The notes beneath the pieces were generated by a model. That model was not told the DNA's origin. It did no database searches and saw nothing but the letters and a program-made list of their open reading frames with translations. Source: Schmidtea polychroa (lineage: Eukaryota). From it: a DNA stretch of 63,815 nt. The stretch spans positions 23,312,186-23,376,000 of the forward strand of contig CM097885.1 of NCBI GenBank assembly GCA_044892525.1. Reading direction: 5' to 3'. Position numbers and translations under genes: made by a program. Shown here one piece after another: positions 7-57,076 of this stretch (position 1 is the first letter of the stretch; each line of letters begins with the position of its first letter).

Positions 7-851
7 TTTTTATTCAAAGATACTGCTGAAGTAACTTATCTTTCATCCCAAGGAGTAAATGTGGGAAATGTCAGTTATTCCTTCCCATACAGCAAAGCCG
101 AATTTCAAATATCCGATCGTGGGCAGTACCTTTATGTCAAAGGAATCAAAGGTTGGGTTTTATGCAAAAGTTTCAGTTTTGATAGAAAATAATTTTATTT
201 AGATTTGAATATTTTCTACAACAAAAAAGGCTCGATTTTTGTATTTGCTCCAGCGACAATGAAAAAACAGGTTTGTGGTTTGTGTGGTCTCTATGACGGC
301 AACGGTGAGGATAAATTTGAAACAGTTGACGCTTCAATGAACCCGATAGCTACTGATTTGAATTTCATAAAAACTTGGCTATCAGTATCAAGAGAAAACC
401 TCTTGAAGCCTGATCCAGCTATTCAAATGGTTAATTGCGATCTGAATGAAGTATTTTGAATTTTCAATGAAATTTGATTATTTTTACACAAAACAAAAGA
501 TGACAACGTGCGAGAAAGTCGTCTCAATTTTCGGAAAGAAATTTGAAGAAATTTGTTACGCAGAATTGTGTCAAATGAAAAATCAGAAAAATTCGTGTGA
601 CCTATTGAGGGATATTGCCTTTTTGAGTTCACCGGAAAAAATCATCAGCGATTGGAGATATAAATTAGATTGCGGTACGGAAATAATTAAATGATTAAAT
701 AAATTTTTATTTGTTTATTTAGAAGAACCTATTTGTCCGAATAAAATGATTTGGTCTGACTGTGGGAATAACTGCAATAATAGATGTGGATTCAACAATG
801 ATGATGTGGACTGTTCAAAAGTTTGTACTCCTGGATGTTATTGTAGGAAAG
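7..851 (+). CDS. Mucin exons 7-151, 203-450, 500-674, 723-851: end of VWD1, degenerate C8-1, TIL1
   Basis: VCGLCGLYDGN; CPNKMIWSDCGNNCNNRC...CSKVCTPGCYC; introns of 51, 49 and 48 bp, all GT-AG. Confidence 0.85.
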
Positions 852-3800
852 GTACTTACTGTTTTATAATTGTCTCTTTATTAAAAATTTATTTTAAATG
901 ACTTAATAAATCTGAGCTTTTACTCAAAATTGAGTTTTCAGTATTAAGACAGTCTCCTCTCCCTCTTGTTCTATTAATGCTCCAAGTTTCTTTTTATACT
1001 AGTTCTCAGCAGAAATATTTAAGCGCGTGATTTAATTGGTCACCTTTTAAGTTTTGCTAAGTCAACTGTAATAAATAAGAAATAAAATCTTGACTCAAAT
1101 TTCATAAAAGAAAAGTTTATTTTTGGCATCAACTTATCAAAAAGAATAGGAAATAGTTCTGAAGCTGTCTCTTCGTGTTCACTAAAAAATCAGATAATTG
1201 ATCACGAGAAAGACCCGTTTACAATGAAGTATAATTTAAAATCTTTGAGTAGAAGTTCAAAGGATTTTACTCCTGATGTAGGTCTTTAATCCTATATTAT
1301 TAAGTAGTTTGTTAATTTCGCTCTTCTGACCAAGGTGGCAAGTTTTTTTGTTTATTTTTATTCATATATATTATTTTTATTAATCATCATTGTTAATGAT
1401 TTCTGTCATATCCATTTCAAGGGACAAATAAGTGGTTGGTGGTGCATTTCCTTCTAAATGTTTTAAGTAATTATTCACATAACATTAGGCTTATATACTT
1501 TTCATAATCAAAATCACTTGAAAAAGGCAGTGCCGAAAATTCGTGAATATCAAAAACATCGATATATTTACTGATTCATAGGCAAGCTTTTTAATAAATG
1601 CAATGTTATATACTTTTGGAAATATAAATTGTTTTAATTTGCGAAAAATTTACATTTTGACCAAATTAATTTTCTTATTACAAAATTTAAATATTATTCC
1701 AAATCTATCAATGAATTTTTGGTTAAAGACAAGAACTTTAACAAAAAAAAGACATGGGAATCGGACTGATACATCTACCATTGAAGAAGAGTATACAAAC
1801 TATGGATTTATCAAAATATAATAACAAGAGTCACCTATGAACAGACCGAAAACGAAGTACGATGAAAGTTAATTATATTTTGGATTTACATCTTTTGGAA
1901 ATTTAGATGTCCTTGATGTGTTTTATGTCATTTACATAATAAACAAATAAATAAACAAGGTGTTCCGTTAAAATTTCAGGATTGACGAAATTTTACAACA
2001 TATGTAAGAGGACAGACCTTTATTTCACTGCTATTTTTGTATTAAATGTTATAAACATAAATCTTATAAGGCATTTTTTTTATTTTCTTCGATATCCCCT
2101 TTATTTTTACAAAATATATTTGGTCACCGTATTCATAAGAGAAGGTTGGGAAACTCTGATTCAGAAAATAAAAATATATTTTATCAAATAATATTGTAGT
2201 TACATCTTTTATCTTATTCAAGATTGGTCTATTTATTTTCAATGTTCTGTATCTTCATTTCCTTTTACACTATATATCGATACTTTGTATTCTATTGATC
2301 GATAGTCTAAAAAGAAATAGAAATAATGGATATAAATGTTATTTATAAAATTCTTTAAAATAGATTTCTTTTGGTACAAAAATCAGTGCAAAAGAGCAGA
2401 TGAATGCCTTTGTGAATACAGAGCATCAGCAAAGCAAATAGATTCCTTTAAATTTGGTGATAAAATGAAGAAAGGCTGTCAAAACTGGTAAATGATAATG
2501 ATAATATATAAAAATTTTACCCTATTTTCTTTTCCTTCCAGTTTATGCGAGAGTAAAGGTCTATGGAAATGTGACACTCATGACCAGTGCTCATCAAGAT
2601 GTATCATCACCGGAGATCCGCATTTTATTACATTTGACAATCAGCACATATTCGTGGAAGGACAATGCCAATATATCGCTGTCATGCCAAAGGAAATAGA
2701 GAGTGATATGCCTCAATTATCAATTATCGTTGAAAATAAATTCTGCTTCAATTCCGAAGATATAACTTGCGCCAAAGGAATAAAAATACTTTTCGGAGAG
2801 GGCATAAATCAAACTGAAATCGAGTAAATTGATGAGACAAAATAATAAACGTTTATTTCAACTAAATTTAGAGTAAAATCCAAAGCAGAAGTATTCATAA
2901 ACAGCAAGCTTGCAACTATACCGTCCAAGGTCAACAAAGGTATAGAAATCTCAGTGTTTAAAGTGACAAGTGACGGCTTAAAGATCGAAGCCGGAGATTT
3001 GTTCAGTGTTTTTCGGAAAGACGATTCACGGATAGAATTAGTTTTGTCGGCTAAATATGCGAAGAAGGTGAATGGAAGCTAATGACGAACGAATTAATTT
3101 TAAGTTGTGTTAGGTAACCGGTCTATGTGGAAACTTTAATGGAGATCCTGAAGATGACAACATCATGCCTGACGGTGCACCAGCAAAAGATGACTCTGAA
3201 TTAGCAGGGAGATACAGATTAACTCAAACCTGTCATGGAGAAGTTTTAAGGCAGTCTTATCTTGGGTTATGCGAAACAAGCATTGAATGGGGGAAAATAG
3301 CCAATGAAGTTTGCGGAAAATTCGGACAAGGTGGAAATAATTTTGGCAACAGTTTTTTTTAACTTAAAGCTTTTAAGGTCAATTCAAAGATTGCGAAGCG
3401 TTAGTCCCATCCGAGAAATTTGTTACTCAATGTAAACATGATGTTTGCAACTGCGGTTTACTGAGAAATGCCAGCACCATAAATTGTGAATGCTCAGCGT
3501 ATTCGGCCTATGCTAGAATATGTTCAATTAAAGGAATTCAATTTCAGTGGAGAACTCCAGAATTCTGTCGTAATATTTTACTTTGACTTAGATTTTCTCT
3601 AACAGTATGATATTTACAGCTGTAACATGTCCAAAAAATATGGTTTACAAAGAATGTGGATCAAGTTGTTCGGCGACTTGTCGGCTAAGACAAAGACCAA
3701 ATTGTGATAACGATTGCATAGATGGTTGCCAATGTCCTGAAGTAAGTCTATAAGTATGGTGATGTCCTCTTGATTCTTGTACTTTAGGATATGGTTATTG

Positions 3801-6800
3801 AAGAAAAAACCGGAAATTGCGTTAAAGTTAATGATTGTAAGTGTGAGTATATGGGAAGAGATTATAATGCCAGAGAAGAAAGAAAAGATCGTTGTAATAC
3901 TTGCACATGCCTCAACGGATTATGGAAATGTACAACTAAAGATTGTTCATGTAATTAAAATCTGATAATTTATTGTTAAATTACACATAAAATGCAGCGC
4001 AAAGCTATTGTCCCAATGGGAAAGTATGGAAAGATTGTGGAGGCTGTCAAAGAACCTGTAGAGACATGAATTTAATTTGTGATCCGAATTCTTGTGAACC
4101 AGGATGTTATTGCGAAAGTGGAGAAGTTTATGACAACAACAAATGTATCCCTAAAGGAGAATGTCCATGTTTCTGGCAAAATCAAAGCTTCAACGAATCG
4201 ACTGTAATAACTCGTGGCCCATTTGAATGCCAATTGGCATGGTAAATAATTCTATAATTTTAGCCATATTTTAAATGTGAATTTCAACACAGCACTTGCA
4301 GAAGTGGAAAATGGGAATGCCCAAAAAGAGACTGTGCTGGTAATTAATCAAATCTTTTATAAAGAAAGAAAAGACAATAATCTTTTTTAATTTATTAAGG
4401 ACAATGCAAAGCCTGGGGCGAATCACATTATATGTCCTTTGATGGGAAGTTTTTCGATTTTCAGGGAGACTGCAGTTATGTTTTACTGGAAGACTATTGC
4501 AACAAAAAATCAGGGATATTCAGAATAGTAATCGAAAATGTAGAATGCGGTTCAAAAGGAACAAGTTGTACTAAGTCAATAAGATTTTACTATAAAGATC
4601 ACATTATTCATTTGATTCGTGGCGCCGCACCAATAATCGGTAGAAATCCAACTTGGTCACCTTATTTGGGAACGGGGATATTTTCCAAGCATGATTACAT
4701 CAGCAGTATTGTCATTATTACAAAAGAAGTCACCATTCAATGGGATAGGCAATTGTCCGTTGATGTAATTTTATCACCAGAATATAAAAATAATGTTTGC
4801 GGTTTGTGCGGCAATTTTGATGACAATGTTGACAATGACTTACGGTAATATTTAATTAATTATGTATTTATATATATATATATATATAAGTTTATCTTCT
4901 AAAAAACGTTTGTATTGTGGCTTAGGAAAATAATAATAATAGTAATTATGATGATGACAATAATAACAATAATAATAATAAAAATAAAAATAAATTAGAA
5001 TTAAAAATCTATTTAAAAGAAATTAAAAATAATAAAAATATATCTTTAATATATATTTTTATTATTTAACCAATGAAAGAGATACTTGGTTAAATTGGAC
5101 AAATTTATCATTATTCGATAGAGAAAAGTCTATTTTTAGATAACTTTAAAATTATTTATATTTTCCGAGTTAAACAATTATAGGCTGATAAATCAAAGTA
5201 ATGATTGCGATATTTATACAAAAATCCAGACATTCAAAAATATATCGAAACCATAAAACCGAAAATTCTTTAATTTCTTAGTTTATTAGGAGAAAAAATA
5301 CTTAAAAACGATAAACTCTGGTACCATTACATTTGTATCGTCCATTAATAGTTAAAATTCTAGATCAACGTTACTATTTTCAGCTCTCTTCATTGTTTCT
5401 TTACCAAATAATGAGTTAATTAATTTTGGAGATAATTAGACACATAAATCGAAGGTATGAATGGCATGTCTGTCCCCAACATTAAGTGATTAGATTTTAT
5501 ATCCTAACACCAACTTATTATTATGTTGGAAAAATTCAGTATTAGCTGAAATCAAGGAACACTTCAACTTCATTGTTTTTTTGGAAAGTAGCAGAAAGTA
5601 AAAAAATATCATTGACCTTTGCTAAGTACATAAATGGTTATTGAACAAAATTTAATGGATTTTCTTACCTAATAGGCTGACTGGGTTCTGTGCCATGGGT
5701 TAACAAACTTTTAGGGACCTACAAAATTTCAGAAAATGAGATAATGAAAAATGAAGTCAAGTAATTGAAAAAAATAATAAGAGATAATTAATGATAAATT
5801 TATTAATTGACCAGAAAATATTGCAATACAAATTTAATAACATTTTTGTACAGAAACGGCTTAAGTCAAACCGTGCTAAATTGAGTCAACTTTACGGTTC
5901 TCTTCCATTTAATTAATTAATTAATATAAAAACCTTTAAAGCATTTACTTTAAATATTATACAACATTGGCCATTTGTTTTCATACGAGAGATAATACTC
6001 ATCGCAGCAATACACATTTCAAAACTTTAATTGAGATATAACTTGTCTATGAATCAGTAAATATATCGATGTTTTTTTTGATATTCACGAATTTTCGGCA
6101 ATGCCTTTTTCAAGTGATTTTTCAGTGGTGAAAATTTAAAAAAGTTCTTAAAATTCGTGAATGGCGAAATCCAAAATTTTGAATTCGGGTTTTAGGGGCG
6201 CCAGATATATGAACCGCACATGTCGCAATAATCCCTTGTTACAGCCTTGAGCTTTTTAATAAATACAATATCAATTTAAAAGAAATCAGTGGTGAAATTT
6301 GAAAAATGTTTTTATAATTAAATTTAAGTTTTTCATTAAATTTTTTGTAAGATAAAATTAAGCCAATTATTTGAATATGCACTTAAATTGATAACGTTTA
6401 AATGATTAATAAATCAAAATTAAATTATGATTTTAGAAATCGAGCTGGAATAATTAATGGTGATGTGAATGCATTTGCAGACAGTTGGAAATTAAAGACT
6501 TCATGCCCATATCCCGAAGTATCTAAAAATCCATGTGATATTAACAAATTTAGAGAAAGCTGGGCTATTAAACGATGTTCTATCTTGAAGAGTGAAACTT
6601 TTGAACCTTGCCATAACACAGTCAGATATCAATTATATTATGAAAAGTGCGTACAAGATTCTTGCGCTTGTGATCGTGGTGATGATTGCCTTTGCGTATG
6701 TACAGCCATATCTCAATATGTCCATGAATGCAATAGGTACAATATTAAAATTCAATGGAGAAACTATGAAAATTGCCGTAAATATAATTGATATATTTTT

Positions 6801-9800
6801 TATATCTTAATTCAATAATTTTCAGCAATTATGTGTCCACCGGATCGAGAATATAAACCTTGTGAAAAGGTCTGTCCAGAAACATGTATTGGAACTAGAA
6901 GCTGCATTTCGGATTGTATGGAAGGATGCTATTGCAAAAATAATACATACTTAAAAGATGGTATGAATTATTATTAAATAATTAAACAATTAAATGAGAA
7001 TTTAAGCCTTTTGTTGCGAAAACTTTATTTAATACAAATGAAAAAAAATTCAACTATACAATAGTCCTTGTGAATTTATTGGAATTTAGTTTCTTCTATT
7101 TTCAAATGCTTTTTGATCTTCTTTTTCATTTCCTTTTTCTTATTTCTCATTGATTAAAAATAATATTAAACTTTTTTCTGAAGAATTTAAAATTTTAAAA
7201 ATATTTATTAAATATTCTATAAAATTCAAAACAAAACACTAAAAAAACATTTTTAAATTTTTAAAGCTTCTATAATTAGCTCATAGAAACCTCTTTTAAT
7301 AAATAATATCTTAAAATCATTATAAAAATATAGTTTCCAATAATACGCAATTTAAATATTTTTAAAAAAGTGTTTATATTTGATTTTTAAAAGTATATTT
7401 CCTTAAAATTTCTATATTATTTTAAATTATTATTTCTAATTTTTTAGAAGCTTTCCTTAAGGTCAATAACAACAAATAAAACTGATGGTTTCATTGATCT
7501 CTTCTTTAGTGTTGGGCGTCTGTTTATGTTTAGAATTGCTTCTTTAAATCTGACATATTTTTTGGATGTTTCCGTTGTCTAGGATTTCGATTGAAATATT
7601 TTTTCTTTCCTTCATTGGTTGACATATTTGGAGATGTCTGTATACCGAGGATTTTCCACCAGGATCTAGATGTTTTTTAACTTTTTGGTTCAGGGTCCTG
7701 AGCATACTTCATATGTATATTTCTTTGCATACGTTGCACGTGATGCAATAGACAATGTTTTTTCAAAAGCATATAGTTTTCGGTGTCTGACATTTTTTCA
7801 TTGCAATTGTTTTCTTTTTTTGTGTTGTTTGCCAGAGCTTTTTTAATGTCCAAGATTTATGTGCTAGACGAATTGGAATGCCAGCGCGTTTAAGTTCTTT
7901 CAGGATCTTGAAGTCGTGTATGTCACTGATGAATAAGATATTCAGATAAAAATATTTCTTCTTTTTTGTGTTATCTCCCTAGATCTTTTTGATGTAGAAT
8001 TCATTCTTTTAATGTCAATACATAGATATCCGTTTCTGTGTAGGATTTTATTGAAGTTTAATTGTTGTTTATAGTTGTCGATTTCTTCAGTACATCGATT
8101 GTCTATCCTTTGTTTTTCGTTTTTTATGACATATACTTTCTGGAAGTATGTAAGCTCTGATCTTTGGAGCATAAATATTTCTTTGCAATGGGGTTTTCTG
8201 TAGAACCCTTATGTTGGAGTATCTGCTTCTATTTTAATTTTTAAGTCCAGTAGATTGAGGGATCAATCTTCTACCGAATATTCGATTTCAAACTTAATAT
8301 CTCGGTGAGCCGCAATAAATATATGAAATATTTCTTCCTCTTCTTTACTGCTTTTGGTCACGATAAAGATATCATCTACATATCTTGCTTTCTCTTAATT
8401 TCTATTCTAAACATTTAATAGCATCTTTTGGTTTGATAGATGTGTATAGTGATACTAAATCAAGACTGAAGGGGTATTTGAATTCTTTATGAGTAGTTCT
8501 GTTATTAATAAATAAATTTCAGTAAATTATGTAAGGTAGATAAAACAATACTTTATATTTTTAAAAATTCGCATTTAGAATATATCTATGAAAATAAATA
8601 AAAATTTGAATCAATAATAGTTTTTGGTTTGTTGGTGATTTAAGATTTCAACTTTTATTAATCTTACTGATTGCTTTTTTTAATAACAAGAGTAACAAAC
8701 CCTTTTCATTATCAAATTTATTGATTCAATACAATTACAACTAATTCTTCTTTAAAAATACTCTAAATGAAATAATTAAACAGCCGCAATTTATCAGACG
8801 CAATTTATCAGTTGTTATTGCATCACTAATTTCAAATAGTACTATTTAACTCAAATTTACAATATCTTGATTCGGGTTTCAAAATATCGACAAGTTACAT
8901 TTAATTTTGTTTGTATTTCACAAGGATTTGAATAATTGATGTAACTAGAACTTTTCTGTTGTTTCGTAATCTCAAAAATATTCTCTTAAGTTTTCTGATT
9001 TCTTTTCTCAAGTTTAATCTGTCAATTTTCTCCATTCAAGTTTTCGTTCGATTTTGCAAATTTTTACTTTACATTTCTGATTCTATAAATAAAACTTATC
9101 AATTATACTTAGATAAACATTACTCGTATTTCTATCATCCGTTCATATTTTATTACAATTTCGATTTTGTTATTTAGATTAGATCTGTGCCTCCCAAAAC
9201 TTTCCATGTTATCTTACAATCTTTTTCAATCCATTCCAACAAATTTGCAAACTACGCCTCTCATCCTTAGATTCTTCTTTAGATGAGCTGTCAAGATAAT
9301 TTTCTGTTTTCTCTATTTTCGTGATTATTTACTAATTAATTAATAAACTTCGTTAACTTCATTAATAAACCTTTCTTTTCTTTATGGCTGGTGTTAATAT
9401 GACCTCCAATTTTATGTTTGTTGTCCTTGTTATTTTAATTGTTTCAACAATCATCTTAATCATCAACAAAATAAATATTTCTAAATTCTCAAAATATATA
9501 TTTTAGATCAATGTGTATCTGAAAAACCTCAATGCACATGCAAAGATGAAAATGGAAAAGAATATCCTTTAGGAGAAACAATAATTAAAAACTGCCATAA
9601 ATGGTTGTTTTCATTTTTTGAAATCCTTTTAATATTTATTTAGTACATGTAAGATAAATGGATTTGAATGCGATAAAGAATTGATACCTAACTGTCTCAC
9701 AACCGGTAAGCTATTATTATTTGTAAATAAATTTATATATTTTGTTAAATAGTTTCTACATCGACAGTACTGACAACAACTGTACCAACAATTACTTCAA

Positions 9801-42800: not shown

Positions 42801-45800
42801 CATATTCCTCACCATCAACAACAACTGGATCCACGACCTCTGAAACTACAACGACTCAATCAACATCGACAGGAACTATTACGACTCCTTCATCTACGGC
42901 CACGACCACAACATATTTCTCGCCATCAACAACAACTGGATCCACGACCTCTGAAACTACAACGACTCAATCAACATCGACAGGAACTATTACGACTCCT
43001 TCATCTACGGCCACGACCACAATATCTTCCTCGCCATCAACAACAACTGGATCCACGTCCTCTGGGACTACAACGACTCAATCAACATCGACAGGAACTA
43101 TTACGACTCCTTCATCTACGGCCACGACCACAATATCTTCCTCGCCATCAACAACAACTGGATCCACGACCTCTGAAACTACAACGACTCAATCAACATC
43201 GACAGGAACTATAACGACTCCTTCATCTACGGCCACGACCACAATATATTCATCGCCATCAACAACAACTGGATCCACGACCTCTGAAACTACAACGACT
43301 CAATCAACATCGACAGGAACTATAACGACTCCTTCATCTACGGCCATGACCACAATATATTCCTCGCCATCAACAACAACTGGATCCACATCCTCTGGGA
43401 CTACAACGACTCAATCAACATCGACAGGAACTATTACGACTCCTTCATCTACGGCCACGACCACAATATCTTCCTCGCCATCAACAACAACTGGATCCAC
43501 ATCCTCTGGGACTACAACGACTCAATCAACATCGACAGGAACTGCTACGACTTCATCATCAATTGTCCCTAGTAGTGAATCATCTTCTTCAACAACAACT
43601 ACAACTCAAACTCCCACTGTTACAAGAACTGGCTCAAGTTCACAACCGATATCATCAACTACGACCTCAAGAATAACAGGTAAAATATCGAAATTATAAT
43701 AATTTTCACATTTTAACCATTTCTTTGGATTGGCCTTGTAACTTGGTTTTTTAATCTTTCTTTTTATGTTTGACAATGTTGACGTGTTTCAGGTTGCAAA
43801 GAAAAGTCTGTTTTGATTTCAACTAAAGAGTATGTGAAAGAAATCGTTGTACCGAAAAATGGAACATCAGAAACCAGTTTGATAACCGATATTTGGAATA
43901 TAACTGTAATTAAAACAGAACCGAAATTCGAAATCAAATTCTACAAACCTGTCATCGTTACGAAGATCAAATTTGAAAACATCGTGAATATCCAGACATT
44001 CAAGTAAAATTTGATTATTGAAATCAAAGATCGAAAATGTTAATATAAACTTTAGTGTACTTGTTCTTTATGAGAACGAAAAAGACTTTAAAACATTCGA
44101 AACAGGACTTAATGTGGAATATGTAAAGGAATACGAGGAAATTGAAAGGATTGTTGAGAAAGTGTCAGCTATAAAGATTACATTTAGTTTGACATCTCCG
44201 AAAGAGAAAGTGTCATTAAAAGTAACAATCGAAGGATGCGGAGAACAGGAAACGACTACAGAAAAATCTACAACAATATCTATTTCCAGTCCGACTGTGT
44301 CATTAACTAGAACTGGAACTAAATCGACAGAGACCACACCATATTCTTTGCCATCAACAACAACTGGATCCACGACCTCTGAAACTACAACGACTCATTC
44401 AACATCGACAGGAACTATTACGACTCCTTCATCTACGGCCACGACCACAACATATTCCTCACCATCAACATCAACTGGATCCACGACCTCTAAAACTACA
44501 ACGACTCAATCAACATCGACAGGAACTATTAGGACTCCTTCATCTACGGCCACAACCACAACATATTCCTCACCATCAACATCAACTGGATCCACCACCT
44601 CTAAAACTACAACGACTCAATCAACATCGACAGGAACTATTAGGACTCCTTCATCTACGGCCACGACCACAATATATTCCTCACCATCAACAACAACTGG
44701 ATCCACGACTACTGAAACTACAACGACTCATTCAACATCGACAGGAACTATTACGACTCCTTCATCTACGGCCACGACCACAACATATTCCTCACCATCA
44801 ACAACAACTGGATCCACGACCTCTGAAACTACAACGACTCAATCAACATCGACAGGAACTATTACGACTCCTTCATCTACGGCCACGACCACAACATATT
44901 TCTCGCCATCAACAACAACTGGATCCACGACCTCTGAAACTACAACGACTCAATCAACATCGACAGGAACTATTACGACTCCTTCATCTACGGCCACGAC
45001 CACAACATCTTCCTCGCCATCAACAACAACTGGATCCACGTCCTCTGGGACTACAACGACTCAATCAACATCGACAGGAACTATTGCGACTCCTTCATCT
45101 ACGGCCACGACCACAATATCTTCCTCGCCATCAACAACAACTGGATCCACGACCTCTGAAACTACAACGACTCAATCAACATCGACAGGAACTATAACGA
45201 CTCCTTCATCTACGGCCACGACCACAATATATTCCTCGCCATCAACAACAACTGGATCCACGACCTCTGAAACTACAACGACTCAATCAACATCGACAGG
45301 AACTATTACGACTCCTTCATCTACGGCCACGACCACAATATCTTCCTCGCCATCAACAACAACTGGATCCACATCCTCTGGGACTACAACGACTCAATCA
45401 ACATCGACAGGAACTGCTACGACTCCATCATCAATTGTCCCTAGTAGTGAATCATCTTCTTCAACAACAACTACAATTCAAACTCCCACTGTTACAAGTA
45501 CTGGCTCAAGTTCACAACCGATATCATCAACAACGACCTCAAGAATAACAGGTAAAATATCGAAATTATAATAATTTTCACATTTTAACCATTTCTTTGG
45601 ATTGGCCTTGTAACTTGGTTTTTTAATCTTTCTTTTTATGTTTGACAATGTTGACGTGTTTCAGGTTGCAAAGAAAAGTCTGTTTTGATTTCAACTAAAG
45701 AGTATGTGAAAGAAATCGTTGTACCGAAAAATGGAACATCAGAAACCAGTTTGATAACCGATATTTGGAATATAACTGTAATTAAAACAGAACCGAAATT

Positions 45801-48800
45801 CGAAATCAAATTCTACAAACCTGTCATCGTTACGAAGATCAAATTTGAAAACATCGTGAATATCCAGACATTCAAGTAAAATTTGATTATTGAAATCAAA
45901 GATCGAAAATGTTAATATAAACTTTAGTGTACTTGTTCTTTATGAGAACGAAAAAGACTTTAAAACATTCGAAACAGGACTTAATGTGGAATACGTAAAG
46001 GAATACGAGGAAATTGAAAGGATTGTTGAGAAAGTGTCAGCTATAAAGATTACATTTATTTTGACATCTCCGAAAGAGAAAGTGTCATTAAAAGTAACAA
46101 TCGAAGGATGCGGAGAACAGGAAACGACTACAGAAAAATCTACAACAATATCTATTTCCAGTCCGACTGTGTCATTAACTAGAACTGGAACTAAATCGAC
46201 AGAGACCACACCATATTCTTCGCCATCAACAACAACTGGATCCACAACCTCTGAAATTACAACGACTCAATCAACATCGACAGGAACTGCTACGACTCCA
46301 TCATCAATTGTCCCTAGTAGTGAATCATCTTCTTCAACAACAACTACAACTCAAACTCCCACTCTTACAAGTACTGGCTCAAGTTCACAACCGATATCAT
46401 CAACAACGACCTCAAGAATAACAGGTAAAATATCGAAATTATAATAATTTTCACATTTTAACCATTTCTTTGGATTGGCCTTGTAACTTGGTTTTTTAAT
46501 CTTTCTTTTTATGTTTGACAATGTTGACGTGTTTCAGGTTGCAAAGAAAAGTCTGTTTTGATTTCAACTAAAGAGTATGTGAAAGAAATCGTTGTACCGA
46601 AAAATGGAACATCAGAAACCAGTTTGATAACCGATATTTGGAATATAACTGTAATTAAAACAGAACCGAAATTCGAAATCAAATTCTACAAACCTGTCAT
46701 CGTTACGAAGATCAAATTTGAAAACATCGTGAATATCCAGACATTCAAGTAAAATTTGATTATTGAAATCAAAGATCGAAAATGTTAATATAAACTTTAG
46801 TGTACTTGTTCTTTATGAGAACGAAAAAGACTTTAAAACATTCGAAACAGGACTTAATGTGGAATATGTAAAGGAATACGAGGAAATTGAAAGGATTGTT
46901 GAGAAAGTGTCAGCTATAAAGATTACATTTAGTTTGACATCTCCGAAAGAGAAAGTGTCATTAAAAGTAACAATCGAAGGATGCGGAGAACAGGAAACGA
47001 CTACAGAAAAATCTACAACAATATCTATTTCCAGTCCGACTGTGTCATTAACTAGAACTGGAACTAAATCGACAGAGACCACACCATATTCTTCGCCATC
47101 AACAACAACTGGATCCACGACCTCTGAAACTACAACGACTCATTCAACATCGACAGGAACTATTACGACTCCTTCATCTACGGCCACGACCACAACATAT
47201 TCCTCACCATCAACATCAACTGGATCCACGACCTCTAAAACTACAACGACTCAATCAACATCGACAGGAACTATTAGGACTCCTTCATCTACGGCCACAA
47301 CCACAACATATTCCTCACCATCAACATCAACTGGATCCACCACCTCTAAAACTACAACGACTCAATCAACATCGACAGGAACTATTAGGACTCCTTCATC
47401 TACGGCCACGACCACAATATATTCCTCACCATCAACAACAACTGGATCCACGACTACTGAAACTACAACGACTCATTCAACATCGACAGGAACTATTACG
47501 ACTCCTTCATCTACGGCCACGACCACAACATATTCCTCACCATCAACAACAACTGGATCCACGACCTCTGAAACTACAACGACTCAATCAACATCGACAG
47601 GAACTATTACGACTCCTTCATCTACGGCCACGACCACAACATATTTCTCGCCATCAACAACAACTGGATCCACGACCTCTGAAACTACAACGACTCAATC
47701 AACATCGACAGGAACTATTACGACTCCTTCATCTACGGCCACGACCACAACATCTTCCTCGCCATCAACAACAACTGGATCCACGTCCTCTGGGACTACA
47801 ACGACTCAATCAACATCGACAGGAACTATTGCGACTCCTTCATCTACGGCCACGACCACAATATCTTCCTCGCCATCAACAACAACTGGATCCACGACCT
47901 CTGAAACTACAACGACTCAATCAACATCGACAGGAACTATAACGACTCCTTCATCTACGGCCACGACCACAATATATTCCTCGCCATCAACAACAACTGG
48001 ATCCACGACCTCTGAAACTACAACGACTCAATCAACATCGACAGGAACTATTACGACTCCTTCATCTACGGCCACGACCACAATATCTTCCTCGCCATCA
48101 ACAACAACTGGATCCACATCCTCTGGGACTACAACGACTCAATCAACATCGACAGGAACTGCTACGACTCCATCATCAATTGTCCCTAGTAGTGAATCAT
48201 CTTCTTCAACAACAACTACAATTCAAACTCCCACTGTTACAAGTACTGGCTCAAGTTCACAACCGATATCATCAACAACGACCTCAAGAATAACAGGTAA
48301 AATATCGAAATTATAATAATTTTCACATTTTAACCATTTCTTTGGATTGGCCTTGTAACTTGGTTTTTTAATCTTTCTTTTTATGTTTGACAATGTTGAC
48401 GTGTTTCAGGTTGCAAAGAAAAGTCTGTTTTGATTTCAACTAAAGAGTATGTGAAAGAAATCGTTGTACCGAAAAATGGAACATCAGAAACCAGTTTGAT
48501 AACCGATATTTGGAATATAACTGTAATTAAAACAGAACCGAAATTCGAAATCAAATTCTACAAACCTGTCATCGTTACGAAGATCAAATTTGAAAACATC
48601 GTGAATATCCAGACATTCAAGTAAAATTTGATTATTGAAATCAAAGATCGAAAATGTTAATATAAACTTTAGTGTACTTGTTCTTTATGAGAACGAAAAA
48701 GACTTTAAAACATTCGAAACAGGACTTAATGTGGAATACGTAAAGGAATACGAGGAAATTGAAAGGATTGTTGAGAAAGTGTCAGCTATAAAGATTACAT

Positions 48801-51800
48801 TTATTTTGACATCTCCGAAAGAGAAAGTGTCATTAAAAGTAACAATCGAAGGATGCGGAGAACAGGAAACGACTACAGAAAAATCTACAACAATATCTAT
48901 TTCCAGTCCGACTGTGTCATTAACTAGAACTGGAACTAAATCGACAGAGACCACACCATATTCTTCGCCATCAACAACAACTGGATCCACGACCTCTGAA
49001 ATTACAACGACTCAATCAACATCGACAGGAACTGCTACGACTCCATCATCAATTGTCCCTAGTAGTGAATCATCTTCTTCAACAACAACTACAACTCAAA
49101 CTCCCACTCTTACAAGTACTGGCTCAAGTTCACAACCGATATCATCAACAACGACCTCAAGAATAACAGGTAAAATATCGAAATTATAATAATTTTCACA
49201 TTTTAACCATTTCTTTGGATTGGCCTTGTAACTTGGTTTTTTAATCTTTCTTTTTATGTTTGACAATGTTGACGTGTTTCAGGTTGCAAAGAAAAGTCTG
49301 TTTTGATTTCAACTAAAGAGTATGTGAAAGAAATCGTTGTACCGAAAAATGGAACATCTGAAACCAGTTTGATAACCGATATTTGGAATATAACTGTAAT
49401 TAAAACAGAACCGAAATTCGAAATCAAATTCTACAAACCTGTCATCGTTACGAAGATCAAATTTGAAAACATCGTGAATATCATGACATTCAAGTAAAAT
49501 TTGATTATTTAAATCAAATATCGAACATGATAATATAAACTTTAGTGTACTTGTTCTTTATGAGAACGAAAAAGACTTTAAAACATTCGAAACAGGACTT
49601 AATGTGGAATACGTAAAGGAATACGAGGAAATTGAAAGGATTGTTGAGAAAGTGTCAGCTATAAAGATTACATTTATTTTGACATCTCCGAAAGAGAAAG
49701 TGTCATTGAAAGTAACAATCGAAGGATGCGGGGAAAAGGAGACAACAACAGAAAAATCTACAACCAAAACTATATCCAGTACTACCTCATCTCCAGCAAG
49801 CACTATTTCACAGCGAGTTACTTCTTCTTCAACACCATCTATATTCGGTTATTTTTTCCATTTTAATATCTTTTTTTTTCTTTTTAATTATTTTTCTCTT
49901 TCATGAGCTTTTCTGATTCTTTGTGTTTTTTATTTTTTTTCGTTTTTTTAGCATACACCCTATTCCTTGATTCGAATGGTGGGATTTATATTCATTTTTT
50001 GCGATCTTTTTATTTTTTGAAATTTTCTGATTTACAACTAAATAATTTAATTAAGAGATATTTTATTTATATTTTCACTCCCGCATAACATTTTGAATTA
50101 GGATAATGTCGGTTTTATTTTTCTCGAACTTTCGAGGCTGAATGCCGAAAATAATAAAGGTCTTAATGGAGTAATTGGTTTTCCATTTGGCGATAGGAAA
50201 TAATATTTCTTACTAAGCACCATAATATAAAGAATCTTATGTTTCATCGCTTTTACTTGATAGGCCAGACTACCTGATGAAGAAAGACAAATGTTACGTT
50301 TCCGTAATTTAGATCGCTATATTGATATATGTTTTAAATTAAATAGACATTGTGCTTCTTGTCTCATAATTATTATTCAACAAATCCCTTCTTTAAATGA
50401 AAACATTTTTGATTCCACCTAACAAAACTTATTGAAAAATCAAAATAACAATTTAAATAAATTTTTAACAAATGCAGATTTTCAAAATTTAAAGAATATA
50501 TTTTATTAGATCTTTCAAAATGATAAAATCAATTTTTTACCCTTCTGGGGTTTTTCGCGACCCACACTTTCAGCACCGCTGATATACACGACGATTGTAA
50601 ACTAATTTTTCAGAAATTAAAATAAATAGAAAAGTTACAATCATATTCAGTTTAATTTCATTCAAAAACATTTCAATTCAGATTTTTAGTTTTATCATTT
50701 GTTATGTTGACTATGAAAATATTTTCCATCGCTCTGGTCAATTTCATGCATTCAATATATGATTTTAGATTTGTCATTTCTCTCCGATATTATTTACACT
50801 TGTCGATTAGCTCTTGATTTTTGGTTTGACAAGATTTAGATTTTTATTCATTCATCTTTTATCTTTATTCATTTATCTTTTCATTTTATTTACTCTTTTT
50901 CCCCTTTAATATTTTGTTCTTCCTTTATTCTCAGTTTTTTATTTCACTATTTTTATTTAATTTCGTTAATTTAAATTTGATTTATTAAGTTTCTTCTATT
51001 TTTATTCTTTTATTTAGGTTGTCTGGAAGTCCTTAGATTATCTACTTTTGATTATGTGGAAAAGACTTTTACATCAAGTATGATAGATTTTGATATTCCT
51101 ATTTTGGGTCAATGGGAATCCTGGAAAAACGATTCTAATCCATTCATCAAAATTATCTTCAAACGCAATTTATTTATTACTCAAATTCAACTCGATAAAA
51201 CAAATAATATTCGGAAATATTCGTAATCATTATGCCATTTTAATGAAATGTAATATTATTTAATTTAGTCTTTTCGTTCAATATGGGGGAAACAGTTCTT
51301 GGTATTCCATAGCGGAAAGCAACCTGTTAAATCCTGATTCTCCGGGCACTGTTAATATCAGTTTATTGGTATCAGCTGTGAAAATTGAAATTGTAAAAGA
51401 AAATATTGATGAATCCGTCAGAGCTTTTCTGTTAATATTCGGTTGTGAGAAGCAAGTAATTTCTACGGAATCCACTCCTATATCAAGGATAACAGAACAC
51501 ACCGAGTCAACACCATTAAATGTAACCACTGTATCGGAACAACATACAACTATTGAAACTACTTTAACCACAACTCTACCGATTAAGAAAGAAAACTGCT
51601 CATTTGTTTTGGAATCAAAATCGAGAATCAAACATGGAAATTGTATTTCCATCGAAGAAATCGAAACCGGTTATTGTTTTGGAGGATGTGCAAGTCGAAG
51701 TTCGATTGACCATTTAACTGGTTCTGTGGATAGCAAATGTTTATGTTGTCAGCCGTCTAAAATTAAGAAAAGCTTAAGATTTACCTGTGGTTAGTTTCTT

Positions 51801-53375
51801 GTTTTCATTGATAGCTTATTTAATGATATTCTGATCATTTCTAAAATCATTTAAAATTGACTGAAATCCTTATTGCACTTATTTTCAAGGTTTTTATTTT
51901 CTGTATTTTGAAACAGATTTTAGTGCACATTGGTAATTGTTTTAGTGATTTTTTTAAAGTAAATTTTAAGATTGGTTATATTCTTAGTTTAATTCATCTT
52001 TATAATCCCGTGTACCATCTATATGTCATATATATTTCAATTGTTTCTAATGAATTTAACTTACCTTACAAAATATCAATTCTTTTTTACTGGTTTAGTT
52101 AAAATTCACTGTTTATGAGGGTGTTGTTAATACCCTCCCTGGAAGTTATATGCGGAAAAATACGATAATACTATAAGAAAATTATATTTATCTTCAGTAT
52201 TTTAATAACCTGTTTAATTTCTTTATTGTTCATGGACAATATTGGTAGCAGCCAAACTTCTGAACTTGAAGAATAAAAGAATTATCTTTTTCTTTGTAGA
52301 ATGATAATAATTTCTATTCGAAGTAGCAAATAATTACATAGGGTTATTAAACTAATGTATTAATGAAATAGTCAATGATATCAACAAGCTGACAGAGAGC
52401 AGCTCATTTGGTATGGATCAAATGTACCTGTTAAAAATAAATTGAGAATTTTTGGAAAAGTATTTCAATAATAAATAATTGCAGTGTCAAACACAAAACA
52501 TTAACCCTTAAATGCATGATTTTTTGTATGGCATTAAAAAATGTTTATTAAAAAAAATTATTATTGACAAAAAACATAGACAAAAACATAGATTTTATTT
52601 TTATTTTCACTTGAATCCATAGACCAGTGTTTCTCAGACTTTTCTCGCTCGCGGCACACTAAAAAATTTTAAAAAGCTCGCGGCACACCTGCCCAAAAAT
52701 CAAATATTTTTACAATTTTTTTGACTTTCCAATGATATACTGATATCCTAAAATACAATGATATACTTTTTAGTCTATACTAATTAAATATGATAAGGTA
52801 ATTTTTATAAGGTAATAAGGACAATTCTTAGTGATTTTGATTCACAGAAGCGACTTTTTCACAATAAAAAGCTTGATATAGTTTTTGTAATTTTTTTTTA
52901 TTACCAACTTTTTTTGGGGAAAAGTCTCGCAGCACACCGTTTGAGAAACACTGCCATAGACAGACAGTTTATCTTATTGCCAGACCTAAAATATATATGG
53001 CTCTCATTAATCATAAATGATTATATTTAAATATTTGGTACGATGGAAATTTCCATCACACTGCATTGAAGGGTTAATATTTTAAAGTTTTATTAATGTG
53101 ACCCATCTCAAGTTCCTCACAACCCTAAATACCAAATCATTTGTAACATTACGAGTATGATCATTGTTATCAATTTTCCTCTCAAAAATACGAATTTTAT
53201 TTATAATGATATACTGATGTAGAGCAATAAATGTTTGATATCTCAATTGTATACTGTCAGTACCTATAATTGTCATTATTCAGATCGTCAATACAAACTT
53301 GTGGAAGTTTACATTATTTCAGCCTGTCAATGCAATTCCTGTCAACAAACAGTGATTGATAAATGCAAAACTTAA
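7..53375 (+). CDS. Giant gel-forming mucin / VWF-hemolectin-like secreted glycoprotein (5'-partial, 69 exons in window, about 8,224 aa): D1-D2-D'-D3, 20 discoidin-like domains with PTS segments, central Cys-rich linker, C-terminal cystine knot
   Basis: Exons joined by hand at GT-AG sites. Phases match at every junction and total 24,675 nt, ending in TAA at 53373-53375. Motifs include CGLCG, GDPHF.TFD, C8 (CVQDSCAC..DCLCVC), TIL, PTS repeats and CTCK. Confidence 0.9.
1516..1605 (+). repeat. Dispersed ~80-95 bp repeat family, copy 1
   Basis: acttgaaaaaggcagtgccgaaaattcgtgaatatcaaaaacatcgatatatttactgattcatagg; homologs at 6041, 28160 and 61607. Confidence 0.8.
2364..3950 (+). CDS. Mucin exons 2364-2487, 2542-2823, 2872-3067, 3114-3330, 3378-3569, 3620-3741, 3788-3950: E1, VWD2, C8-2, TIL2, E2
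   Basis: CIITGDPHFITFD; VTGLCGNFNGDPEDD; CKHDVCNC...CECSAYSAYARIC...WRTPEFC; CPKNMVYKECGSSC; introns 46-54 bp. Confidence 0.9.
3998..4844 (+). CDS. Mucin exons 3998-4241, 4293-4339, 4400-4844: TIL'-E' (D') and VWD3
   Basis: CPNGKVWKDCGGCQRTC; CKAWGESHYMSFDGK...GDCSYVL...ENVECG...VCGLCGNFDDN. Confidence 0.9.
6041..6117 (-). repeat. Dispersed repeat family, copy 2 (inverted)
   Basis: Reverse complement of the 1516 copy with few mismatches. Confidence 0.8.
6437..6960 (+). CDS. Mucin exons 6437-6777 and 6826-6960: C8-3 and TIL3
   Basis: FADSWK...CSILKSETFEPCH...YYEKCVQDSCACDRGDDCLCVCTAISQYVHEC...WRNYENCPIMC, closely matching the D3 C8 pattern of MUC2/VWF. Confidence 0.92.
7490..8480 (-). mobile_element. 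Decayed Penelope-like retroelement (RT + GIY-YIG endonuclease)
   Basis: Minus strand reads FSLDLVSLYTSIKPKDAI, ARYVDDIF, IKFEIE...LLDLKI...FYRKP, then NIVYCITCNVCKEIYI*...RTL...KHL...SSVYRH, with stops and frameshifts. Confidence 0.85.
9507..10254 (+). CDS. Mucin exons 9507-9603, 9644-9705, 9753-9815, 10219-10254: E3 and first short Thr/Ser linkers
   Basis: CTCKDENGKEYPLGETIIKNCHKCTC; Thr-rich micro-exons with phase-1 boundaries. Confidence 0.8.
10305..10812 (+). CDS. Discoidin/F5-8C-like domain 1 plus PTS (exons 10305-10521 and 10568-10812)
   Basis: CEVP...ISASS...GWEPFINDLNPIIKLEF...IKGI...KVTIEGC. A 46-bp phase-2 intron removes an in-frame TAG and restores the frame. Confidence 0.75.
11161..11298. 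repeat. 68-bp tandem duplication in an extremely AT-rich intron tract
   Basis: tttaatcaaatt.aatcctattacttattaaa...ttaataaatcaataaaattg occurs at 11161 and 11229. Confidence 0.7.
12790..14200 (+). mobile_element. Decayed R2/R4/NeSL-like non-LTR retrotransposon RT fragment (spans N gap)
   Basis: NGYDEHNYIIQ; HLAFLDLTDVFGSILH; GIKQGCPLS; LPYADGL (degenerate YADD); LTFKPEKC; YTYLGV; LRPQQKI; with frameshifts. Confidence 0.85.
13786..13938. other. Assembly gap (153 N)
   Basis: Run of N. Confidence 1.
15095..15778. mobile_element. Non-autonomous piggyBac-type element (684 bp)
   Basis: TTAA on both sides; TIRs ccacttgccgggcga / tcgcctggcaagtgg with one mismatch. Confidence 0.8.
16010..16667 (+). 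CDS. PTS micro-exon 16010-16063 and discoidin-like domain 2 (16108-16318, 16369-16667)
   Basis: CKETLTLVSTKEFISEI...FYKPITITEIIFEN...KLIIIGC. Diverged homolog of the array domain with the same 211-bp first exon. Confidence 0.8.
16781..17885 (+). CDS. Array-1 module 1 (discoidin-like + 3 full 37-aa repeats)
   Basis: Exons 16781-16991 and 17044-17885; phase 1-2-1 GT-AG junctions. Confidence 0.85.
17999..19214 (+). CDS. Array-1 module 2 (4 full repeats)
   Basis: Same two-exon structure; period 1329. Confidence 0.85.
19328..20432 (+). CDS. Array-1 module 3 (3 full repeats)
   Basis: Same two-exon structure; period 1218. Confidence 0.85.
20546..21650 (+). CDS. Array-1 module 4 (3 full repeats)
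   Basis: Same two-exon structure; period 1218. Confidence 0.85.
21764..22757 (+). CDS. Array-1 module 5 (2 full repeats)
   Basis: Same two-exon structure; period 1107. Confidence 0.85.
22871..23864 (+). CDS. Array-1 module 6 (2 full repeats)
   Basis: Same two-exon structure; period 1107. Confidence 0.85.
23978..25082 (+). CDS. Array-1 module 7 (3 full repeats)
   Basis: Same two-exon structure; period 1218. Confidence 0.85.
25196..26300 (+). CDS. Array-1 module 8 (3 full repeats)
   Basis: Same two-exon structure; period 1218. Confidence 0.85.
26414..27461 (+). CDS. Array-1 module 9 (2 full repeats, unique Ser-rich tail)
   Basis: Exons 26414-26624 and 26677-27461; donor G|GTTTGT. Confidence 0.85.
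27509..27997 (+). CDS. Highly diverged discoidin-like domain 12 and start of a VWC-like module (exons 27509-27705, 27752-27997)
   Basis: PCKIVETFEY...FSLTFTF...SMKVFGC followed by FCIVEGKKYW; 46-bp phase-0 intron. Confidence 0.7.
28160..28256 (-). repeat. Dispersed repeat family, copy 3 (inverted)
   Basis: Reverse complement of the 1516 and 61607 copies. Confidence 0.8.
28844..28925. mobile_element. 82-bp piggyBac-type mini-element
   Basis: TTAA|ccctttcgcggac ... gtccattaaaggg|TTAA. Confidence 0.75.
29848..38469 (+). CDS. Central Cys-rich linker exons 29848-29967, 31993-32302, 34200-34377, 37864-37904, 37953-38170, 38217-38349, 38401-38469 (VWC-like and TIL-like modules)
   Basis: CMRKSCICDNGEERC...CANC; ENGCCSC; CHKDCGNC...CKCPPG; CEESCQ...CSCPTGYVKD...CVKSTNCNC; phases chain 0-0-1-2-1-0-1-1. 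Confidence 0.72.
30519..30678. other. Assembly gap (160 N)
   Basis: Run of N. Confidence 1.
33598..33862. mobile_element. hAT-type MITE (265 bp)
   Basis: TIR cagtgttatccaaac / gtttggacaacactg; 8-bp TSD cattcagt / cattaagt; repeated gcggcacac subterminal motifs. Confidence 0.85.
35259..35522. mobile_element. Probable degenerate MITE inserted in a (TA)n tract
   Basis: GC-richer ends taggcccggcg / gcgccggtgctg are imperfectly inverted and flanked by (TA)n on both sides. Confidence 0.4.
35915..36420 (-). mobile_element. Fossil Tc1-like transposase fragment
   Basis: Minus strand WPVQNADLSLIDNLW resembles Tc1 WP..SPDL.PIENLW; upstream LFTDFRRSKF resembles LFTDES.F; disrupted. Confidence 0.6.
40259..41684 (+). 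CDS. Array-2 module 1 (6 full repeats)
   Basis: Two-exon module; 873 + 6 x 111. Confidence 0.85.
41798..43679 (+). CDS. Array-2 module 2 (10 full repeats)
   Basis: Two-exon module; 885 + 10 x 111. Confidence 0.85.
43793..45551 (+). CDS. Array-2 module 3 (9 full repeats)
   Basis: Two-exon module; 873 + 9 x 111. Confidence 0.85.
45665..46424 (+). CDS. Array-2 module 4 (no full repeat)
   Basis: Two-exon module; 873 bp. Confidence 0.85.
46538..48296 (+). CDS. Array-2 module 5 (9 full repeats; copy of module 3)
   Basis: ORF-track protein differs from module 3 at one residue (YSSP vs YSLP). Confidence 0.85.
48410..49169 (+). CDS. Array-2 module 6 (copy of module 4)
   Basis: ORF-track protein identical to module 4. 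Confidence 0.85.
49283..49847 (+). CDS. Array-2 module 7 (discoidin-like + short unique PTS)
   Basis: Exons 49283-49493 and 49546-49847; donor G|GTTATT. Confidence 0.82.
51018..51789 (+). CDS. Discoidin-like domain 20, short PTS and first part of the C-terminal cystine knot (exons 51018-51222, 51269-51789)
   Basis: GCLEVL...WESWKNDSNPFIKIIF...LLIFGC; then CSF...GNCIS...GYCFGGCAS...SKCLCCQP...FTC. Confidence 0.88.
52505..53073. mobile_element. piggyBac-type non-autonomous element hosting a nested hAT MITE
   Basis: TTAA|cccttaaatgca ... tgcattgaaggg|TTAA. Confidence 0.78.
52625..52953. mobile_element. hAT (Charlie-like) MITE, 329 bp
   Basis: TIR cagtgtttctca / tgagaaacactg; perfect 8-bp TSD ccatagac; gcggcacac motifs shared with the 33598 element. 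Confidence 0.9.
53284..53375 (+). CDS. Terminal exon completing the cystine knot
   Basis: ttcag|AT CGT...: (D)RQYKLVEVYIISACQCNSCQQTVIDKCKT*; phase 1 matches the donor at 51790. Confidence 0.88.
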
Positions 53376-56892: not shown

Positions 56893-57076
56893 NNNNNNNN
56901 NNNNNNNNNNNNNNNNNNNNNNNNNNNNNNNNNNNNNNNNNNNNNNNNNNNNNNNNNNNNNNNNNNNNNNNNNNNNNNNNNNNNNNNNNNNNNNNNNNNN
57001 NNNNNNNNNNNNNNNNNNNNNNNNNNNNNNNNNNNNNNNNNNNNNNNNNNNNNNNNNNNNNNNNNNNNNNNNNNNN
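56893..57076. other. Assembly gap (184 N)
   Basis: Run of N. Confidence 1.

Follow-up and report, generated by a model that had tools for sequence, protein, structure and literature searches.

Can a gel-forming mucin be built with discoidin-like domains in the places where its vertebrate counterparts carry CysD domains? This question is raised by a locus of Schmidtea polychroa (contig CM097885.1 of assembly GCA_044892525.1, forward-strand positions 23,312,186 to 23,376,000). The window referred to below is the whole of this 63,815-nucleotide (nt) stretch of AT-rich animal DNA (28% GC), in which the gene under study lies on the + strand. We consider it probable (roughly three chances in four) that the locus encodes most of one giant secreted glycoprotein of the gel-forming mucin/VWF type, with discoidin-like domains (hereafter beads) placed between Thr/Ser tracts. 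Between a head of VWD-C8-TIL assemblies and a C-terminal cystine knot (CTCK), about 7,000 residues consist of 20 domains of about 130 amino acids (aa) alternating with such tracts. The gene itself is real and expressed.

The exon chain was obtained by dynamic programming over all open segments bounded by AG and GT, independently of an initial annotation made from the letters of this DNA, and its boundaries were corrected by homology among bead copies and by RNA joints. The final model comprises 67 exons with GT-AG introns throughout, mostly short (median 52 nt), and 24,540 coding nt, corresponding to 8,179 codons free of internal stops, with the stop codon at 53373-53375. The initial annotation had estimated about 8,200 aa in 69 exons, with 20 domains in two arrays; the independent chain arrives at nearly the same size and reproduces both the number of domains and their arrangement. 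The window start falls inside the VWD of the first assembly (D1), so that the gene's 5' end, along with any signal peptide, falls upstream of it. Bead-copy homology, Pfam RVT_1 and the RNA joints also removed false exons of the first chain: exons 12890-13403 belong to a retrotransposon, a GC-rich pseudo-exon at 35262-35349 proposed as an 88-nt frame 'adapter' is unused in the RNA joints, and the exons past 53373-53375 lie beyond the real stop.

The head has the order D1-D2-D'-D3, as in VWF and gel-forming mucins (Pfam; D1 is incomplete at the window edge). Above the curated Pfam cut-offs, VWD was detected in three places, C8 twice (3380-3568 and 6402-6788) and TIL four times (725-841, 3622-3741, 4000-4239 and 6828-6959), the best VWD match covering 4399-4845. 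The features of the head are as follows.

7..842, + strand: D1 assembly, cut by the window start (Pfam VWD, TIL)
7-175 and 254-450, + strand: exons of the D1 VWD end with a CGLCG motif (Pfam VWD E 1.2e-6 on 193-456)
500-674, + strand: C8-like Cys-rich exon of D1
723-842, + strand: D1 TIL (Pfam TIL E 3.8e-6 on 725-841)
2364..3950, + strand: D2 assembly (Pfam VWD, C8, TIL, VWF-like)
2542-2823, 2872-3067 and 3114-3330, + strand: exons of the D2 VWD (Pfam VWD E 8e-10 and 1.8e-5)
3378-3569, + strand: D2 C8 (Pfam C8 E 1.2e-14)
3620-3741, + strand: D2 TIL (Pfam TIL E 1.6e-8)
3788-3950, + strand: VWF-type E module of D2 (Pfam VWF-like E 2.6e-4)
3998..9705, + strand: D'D3 assembly (Pfam TIL, VWD, C8)
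3998-4241, + strand: D' TIL (Pfam TIL E 3.9e-9)
4293-4339, + strand: E' module
4400-4844, + strand: D3 VWD (Pfam VWD E 3.6e-32)
6437-6777, + strand: D3 C8 (Pfam C8 E 2.2e-18)
6826-6960, + strand: D3 TIL (Pfam TIL E 1.1e-6)
9507-9603 and 9644-9705, + strand: Cys-rich E-like exons of D3

The C8-like exon of D1 (500-674) gave no Pfam match when scanned alone. A 683-aa predicted protein of a related genome (P0005) is 82% identical to the product of this gene and links the D3 exons to the first bead; its D'D3 is 33-40% identical to that of fish and amphibian MUC5AC/MUC2/MUC5B, and its best named relatives are fish and amphibian mucin-5AC/2/5B together with some SCO-spondin-like proteins.

Downstream of the head lie 20 beads, of which 16 are near-identical copies in two arrays (nine from 16781 and seven from 40259) and four are divergent (starting at 10305, 16108, 27509 and 51018). 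Between the head and the stop codon, the features are as follows (PTS, Pro/Thr/Ser).

10305-10521 and 10568-10812, + strand: exons of bead 1, divergent, the second ending in a short Thr-rich tract
10813..16009, + strand: predicted 5.2-kb intron after bead 1, containing a reverse-transcriptase fragment and the first assembly gap, with both flanking exons in phase 1
16010-16063, + strand: PTS mini-exon
16108-16318 and 16369-16667, + strand: exons of bead 2, divergent, with PTS after it
16781..27461, + strand: array 1, nine near-identical modules (within-array identity 99.3%, introns counted)
27509-27705 and 27752-27997, + strand: exons of bead 12, divergent, its internal intron in phase 0 instead of phase 2
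29848..38469, + strand: middle Cys-rich region (about 370 aa, 44 Cys) and a PTS exon
29848-29967, 31993-32302, 34200-34377, 37864-37904, 37953-38170 and 38217-38349, + strand: exons of the middle Cys-rich region
38401-38469, + strand: PTS exon after the middle Cys-rich region
40259..49847, + strand: array 2, seven near-identical bead + PTS modules with a period of 873-1995 nt
51018-51222 and 51269-51789, + strand: exons of bead 20, divergent, part of 51018..51789
53284..53375, + strand: terminal exon with the knot end (C-x-C-x-x-C) and the stop, modelled, with no RNA or relative in support

Counted from the first Cys through the final GC, each bead is 128-133 aa long, has one Cys at each end and none inside, is interrupted by an intron of 46-52 nt at an identical site and is followed by a Thr/Ser tract. 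The terminal Cys pair is predicted to form a disulfide staple. The repeated unit consists of an exon starting with GCKEKS, a 52-nt intron (GTAAAAT...TTTAG) and an exon that closes the bead with KVTIEGC before running into Thr/Ser codons. In array 1 the exon for the N-terminal half is 211 nt long, the second exon combines the C-terminal half with PTS, and the period varies from 1107 to 1329 nt in steps of 111 nt, each equal to one 37-aa PTS repeat. The 20 Thr/Ser tracts account for 4,357 of the 8,179 residues (53%); the chain as a whole contains 25.5% Thr, 16% Ser and only 4.3% Pro, which makes these tracts rich in Thr and Ser, not in Pro. The main bead carries two N-glycosylation sequons. The divergent beads are 17-41% identical to it and retain the core motifs, implying that the bead family predates the recent expansion of the arrays; bead 1 is the copy that appears most discoidin-like by eye (ISASS...GWEP motifs). 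The two arrays are separated by the middle Cys-rich region, whose exons, scanned singly, had no Pfam match.

What kind of domain the bead is cannot be read from Pfam searches with half-beads, which gave no match at E<=1, and phmmer searches of the bead against PDB sequences returned noise only. When a profile of five bead N-halves was searched against 1.84 billion proteins, nine were matched: two spliced predictions of the related genome (P0001 and P0005), a Ciona intestinalis 'mucin-5AC-like' protein (XP_026696163.1, P0010), three short fragments of exon size (two of them from ENA, with the readable contig being a metagenome scaffold, and the third from JGI/IMG) and three unrelated repetitive or multi-domain proteins. 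The Ciona protein contains five F5_F8_type_C domains (Pfam E 3e-58), and the profile hit these F5/8C domains in four stretches (hmmsearch, E 6.6e-5). An hhalign comparison of eight spliced beads with the five Ciona domains gave 95.6% probability (E 1e-8) over 123 columns, covering the bead from one end to the other and matching both its first Cys and its closing GC to Cys positions of Ciona. The bead is about 20 residues shorter than a typical F5/8C domain, and this alignment places the gaps within its C-terminal half. Membership of the F5/8C family is thus supported at the level of sequence profiles.

Structure comparisons point in the same direction. For P0001, the neighbours in the ESM Atlas are F5_F8_type_C clusters when ranked by features, and F5/8C together with further galactose-binding-like domains when ranked by structure (template modelling (TM) score 0.72-0.80). 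An AlphaFold model from a bead-only alignment (predicted local distance difference test (pLDDT) 69, predicted TM score 0.71) retrieved from the PDB by Foldseek the F5/8C domains of chitobiases, the discoidin domain of muskelin, CBM32, neuropilin b1, factor VIII C2 and DDR1 (E ~1e-5). A second model, with the Ciona F5/8C rows in its alignment, reached pLDDT 75, and VIA-align superposed 117-131 of its 133 residues on IFT25, CBM32, galactose oxidase domain 1, neuropilin-2 b domains, DDR1/2 and factor VIII C2 (Z 12-14, root-mean-square deviation 2.3-3.5 A). The predicted fold, a galactose-binding-like jelly roll of the discoidin type, is sound on these models, in agreement with the discoidin-like nature first proposed for the bead from the letters, and the bead is a short divergent F5/8C branch missed by curated models.

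Similar frames also occur in short ENA and JGI/IMG contigs. Those of P0003 and P0008 are exon-sized and 40-49% identical to bead N-halves, that of P0002 is likewise exon-sized, and the metagenome contig L001 bears a bead-like N-half at 91-321 with no obvious exon for a bead C-half on the contig. Judging from these similarities, which imply further members of the bead family, the frames may belong to other genes or to related animals with DNA in the samples concerned.

At the 3' end, exon 51269-51789 is one open frame that holds the C-terminal half of bead 20, a PTS tract and the cystine knot over its first two thirds. When the tail was searched by phmmer against the PDB, only the VWF CTCK structures 4nt5 and 9qrv were matched (E 2e-5), the partial tail exon scored below threshold against Pfam Cys_knot (E 0.009), and the spliced tail contains 12 Cys with the motifs CxGGC, CLCC and CQCNSC. 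A search for homologous proteins with the last large exon returned none, but its length filter leaves out the longer relative P0001, and this blank carries no weight as a sign of absence. P0001, which is spliced, shows the same layout, its final main bead being followed by bead 20 and then by the CTCK. Both ends of the chain that the initial annotation had described, a D1-D3 head of VWD-C8-TIL units and a C-terminal cystine knot, are therefore borne out, the former by the above-threshold Pfam matches and the latter by the similarity to VWF.

Considering that VWD-C8-TIL units and F5/8C domains also meet in other secreted proteins, we weighed whether the product might be a hemolectin/hemocytin- or SCO-spondin-type protein acting in clotting, wound sealing or an extracellular fibre rather than a mucus mucin. 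In the parts of the survey by Lang et al. 2016 (PMC4948705) drawn on here, hemolectin is described as three VWD-C8-TIL units, F5/8C (F5_F8_type_C) domains and then two more units, with PTS that is at most very small; such a combination, and the SCO-spondin-like names of some of the closest head relatives, speak for this alternative. However, the 3+2 arrangement of VWD is absent here, as no VWD-like open frame or Pfam match was found downstream of 4844, TSP1 and LDLa, of which SCO-spondin has many repeats, were not matched by Pfam in any exon scanned (its N-terminal EMI domain would fall upstream of the window), the best head matches are MUC5AC/MUC2/MUC5B, and Thr/Ser tracts make up over half of the residues against the 'very small PTS' of insect hemolectins. 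We regard this alternative as improbable.

Whether all these parts belong to one coding sequence, as the initial annotation had it, turns on the long introns, and RNA joints were sought over 32100-38099, the weakest stretch of the model. Contigs from three runs of two studies (X1, 1,716 nt; X3, 1,150 nt; X4, 757 nt) join 32302 to 34200, 34377 to 37864 and 37904 to 37953. The 41-nt exon 37864-37904, which was revealed by RNA, restores the frame exactly, and four middle exons are thereby joined in frame. Two of these contigs, X1 and X3, extend 302 nt past 38099, a length equal to the 273 nt left of three modelled exons plus 29 nt; judging by these lengths, the k=31 assembly probably halted on entering the repeated bead. 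Elsewhere, 42% of the sampled words are present at bead 1 in run X1, and 45-62% at the 3' end (51018..51789) in runs X1-X4. At two exonic sites all runs with coverage (3/3) depart from the assembly, with T in place of C at 34317 and C in place of T at 37864, the latter being synonymous (AAT>AAC); the changes seem to reflect different strains for the RNA samples and the assembled individual rather than editing.

Two intronic stretches, 33666-33868 and 35284-35526, were observed in the same region with RNA contigs at a depth of 150-440, versus about 15 for the mucin exons. These contigs occur on both strands and have loose ends running into unrelated sequence; they probably represent repeats that are transcribed, or small RNAs that lack annotation. 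When the whole window was scanned with Rfam, no match was obtained.

Several points weigh against the reading of the locus as one giant mucin with F5/8C-type beads. The bead remains below the curated Pfam threshold: the spliced bead of P0001 scored 17.7 bits against F5_F8_type_C (PF00754; E 0.004), where the gathering cut-off is 28.2. Both AlphaFold models are of middling confidence, and the second drew on Ciona F5/8C rows. The check proposed at the outset for the spliced bead (Pfam/HHpred-type searches together with AlphaFold and Foldseek) thus favours the fold and the profile homology but not the Pfam threshold. As to continuity, all bead + PTS modules begin and end in phase 1, which nearly guarantees a frame-consistent chain from any subset of them and makes such a chain weak evidence for continuity. 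A single transcript is seen for four middle exons only, and never at full length, while the links 10812 to 16010, 27997 to 29848 to 31993, 38469 to 40259 and 51789 to 53284 are predictions with the exon model as their only source. The bead units are 97-100% identical with introns counted, and a two-module block of 2,745 nt (43793-46537) repeats in tandem at 46538-49282 with 99.93% identity (2 mismatches), which points to a very recent duplication or else to an artefact of assembly, so that the count of 20 beads depends on the assembly. Finally, the case for flatworm mucus is circumstantial.

Some of these points would also be expected if the locus held two or more genes, or if the arrays had been inflated or collapsed in assembly, in which case the 8,200-aa chain with 20 beads would be an artefact of chaining. 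Besides the uniform module phase and the repeated block, this possibility draws on two N gaps (13786-13938 and 30519-30678) inside the long predicted introns 10813-16009 and 29968-31992, where hidden exons or misjoins could lie (the model takes no letters from the gaps), on a stop codon that the unspliced exon 34200 meets 15-20 nt downstream, and on P0005, which passes from the PTS of bead 1 into a transposase-like stretch. Against it, the RNA contigs splice in frame through the most suspect place (34377 to 37864 to 37953), the ends of the X1 and X3 contigs would fit a stop just inside a repeated bead, an exon with a start codon and a signal-peptide-like sequence was not seen between the arrays, and bead 20, PTS and CTCK share a single exon. 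We therefore consider a split gene or an assembly artefact unlikely. Within and between modules, links over introns of 46-113 nt are secure from the sequence. Of the earlier proposal of one coding sequence, the frame-consistent chain and the RNA-joined middle exons hold good, whereas the links spanning gaps, the step between beads 1 and 2 and the copy number are tentative.

The intron after bead 1 also contains a reverse-transcriptase fragment at 12868-13519 (+ strand, the same as the gene; Pfam RVT_1 E 2.5e-11). Given that a transposase-like stretch follows the bead 1 PTS in P0005, mobile elements seem to have landed in this intron repeatedly.

If the locus encodes one mucin-type chain, its assembly may be pictured by analogy. 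In MUC2/MUC5AC/MUC5B and VWF, CTCK tails dimerise, D heads are linked by disulfides and Thr/Ser tracts are O-glycosylated. Correspondingly, the knot may dimerise tails in the endoplasmic reticulum, the D assemblies may form disulfides between heads in the Golgi, dense O-glycan brushes may develop on the Thr/Ser tracts, and head, tail and brushes together might yield a linear or net-like polymer. By the same analogy, the product is likely a mucus or adhesive secretion. The beads would then stand in the CysD place as folded, disulfide-stapled and probably N-glycosylated nodes, for which we see about even odds, and they may offer many weak sites for glycans or partner proteins, thereby tuning gel cross-linking or stickiness. 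Of the initial suggestion that a lectin-like domain takes the CysD position, the placement between PTS tracts stands, and the lectin activity is putative.

How much the beads contribute beyond their position can be argued in two ways. They might be inert, protease-resistant and ligand-free spacers that merely interrupt the glycan brush, a serious possibility to which we give somewhat less than an even chance. It would suit the reduced length of the beads, with the gaps in their C-terminal half, a family diverged beyond Pfam detection, and 16 main copies so nearly identical that they give no sign of diversified specificities. On the other hand, the closest solved folds are carbohydrate-binding CBM32 domains (some with galactose or Tn antigen) and ligand-binding neuropilin and DDR domains, and the retention of core motifs in the four divergent copies suggests selection on the fold. 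Ligands of F5/8C domains (glycan, lipid or protein) are bound by loops at one end of the barrel, and the family has no universal binding motif. A bolder possibility is that the beads are lectins for the mucin-type O-glycans of their own or neighbouring chains, giving a gel or glue that cross-links itself reversibly. This is suggested by the structural neighbours, which include CBM32 with galactose and with Tn antigen, and by flatworm adhesives, in which a VWD protein carrying a lectin is paired with a partner that is glycosylated; we consider it speculative and doubtful. If it were true, self-binding beads would be a gelation principle unlike the CysD and disulfide network of vertebrate mucus, with ligand and receptor in one polypeptide.

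Downstream of the gene, the window contains a fragment of a pogo/Tc5-type transposase DNA-binding domain (61411-61596, + strand; Pfam HTH_Tnp_Tc5 E 4.4e-10) and a third assembly gap (56893-57076, 184 N), which lies about 3.5 kb beyond the stop codon and outside the mucin gene.

Among known systems, vertebrate MUC2/MUC5AC/MUC5B resemble the protein encoded here most closely in their overall plan, as they share the D1-D2-D'D3 head (33-40% identity over D'D3, read on P0005), a very long PTS region broken by small folded Cys-containing domains, and a C-terminal cystine knot. They differ in the interrupter, which is a two-Cys F5/8C-like beta-sandwich here and CysD, a domain with 10 Cys, in vertebrates; no CysD-type Pfam match was found in the exons scanned. 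The PTS is spread over many exons here, unlike vertebrate mucins, in which it occupies one giant central exon. Neither D4 nor recognisable VWC modules ahead of the knot were found among open frames or by Pfam. The nearest counterpart of the beaded part is Ciona intestinalis XP_026696163.1, an automatically annotated and uncharacterised protein, in which Thr/Ser tracts alternate with five two-Cys F5/8C domains, and Cys-rich TIL/VWC modules and further PTS come after them. Its beads number five against 20 here and are of canonical length (140-168 aa) and recognised by Pfam; moreover, it lacks a VWD head and ends in an LDLa-like module instead of a CTCK, and may be partial. Its Cys-rich part showed no significant similarity to the middle Cys-rich region here (E 0.37) despite a common 'NGCCSC' string.

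Other invertebrate proteins share some of these elements. In the sections of the survey by Lang et al. 2016 (PMC4948705) considered here, mucin-like proteins of lophotrochozoans are characterised by the F5_F8 domain, and these and hemolectin combine VWD-C8-TIL units with F5_F8_type_C; in contrast to hemolectin as described there, the present gene has no second VWD block, 20 beads and PTS in half of the chain. The planarian genes Smed-muc-like-1/2/3 encode three N-terminal VWD with Cys-rich/TIL, and peripharyngeal secretory cells express them (Forsthoefel et al. 2020, PMC7117911); that paper describes the heads only, with no mention of F5/8C beads or a central region, and orthology to the gene here is possible. 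The flatworm adhesive protein Mlig-ap1 and its relatives are secreted and combine a lectin domain with VWD-C8-TIL (PMC8621496), but in Mlig-ap1 this is a C-type lectin accompanied by EGF repeats, and PTS arrays, F5/8C or CTCK are not reported there. A precedent for a swapped interrupter is provided by the gel-forming mucins FIM-A.1/FIM-C.1 of the Xenopus integument, whose Cys-rich modules, in the portion of the source referred to here, are TFF rather than CysD (PMC7177656); these are TFF and not F5/8C, and of the vertebrate lineage.

Our literature searches found no paper describing a mucin with a long regular F5/8C-PTS array. Even so, the initial claim of an unrecognised architecture was overstated in view of the F5_F8 statement of Lang et al., the alternation in Ciona and the TFF modules of Xenopus, as far as these sources were covered. 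The sub-threshold Pfam score and the mere nine matches among 1.84 billion proteins suggest that automatic annotation misses this bead family and that such mucins are probably under-counted in spiralian genomes. Mucins are defined by a glycan brush together with a head and a tail that polymerise, and the brush interrupter, be it CysD, TFF or, here, F5/8C, probably sets gel cross-linking and stickiness. A naturally occurring mucin that bears 20 lectin-fold domains at regular intervals and has a tunicate counterpart offers a tractable case for studying bead function and a template for engineered multivalent mucin-like materials. Compared with the known systems, the layout takes to an extreme one that surveys had noted before, and does not make this a new kind of protein; what is new is its degree and regularity (20 beads, half of the chain PTS and no second VWD block) together with the divergent bead subfamily.

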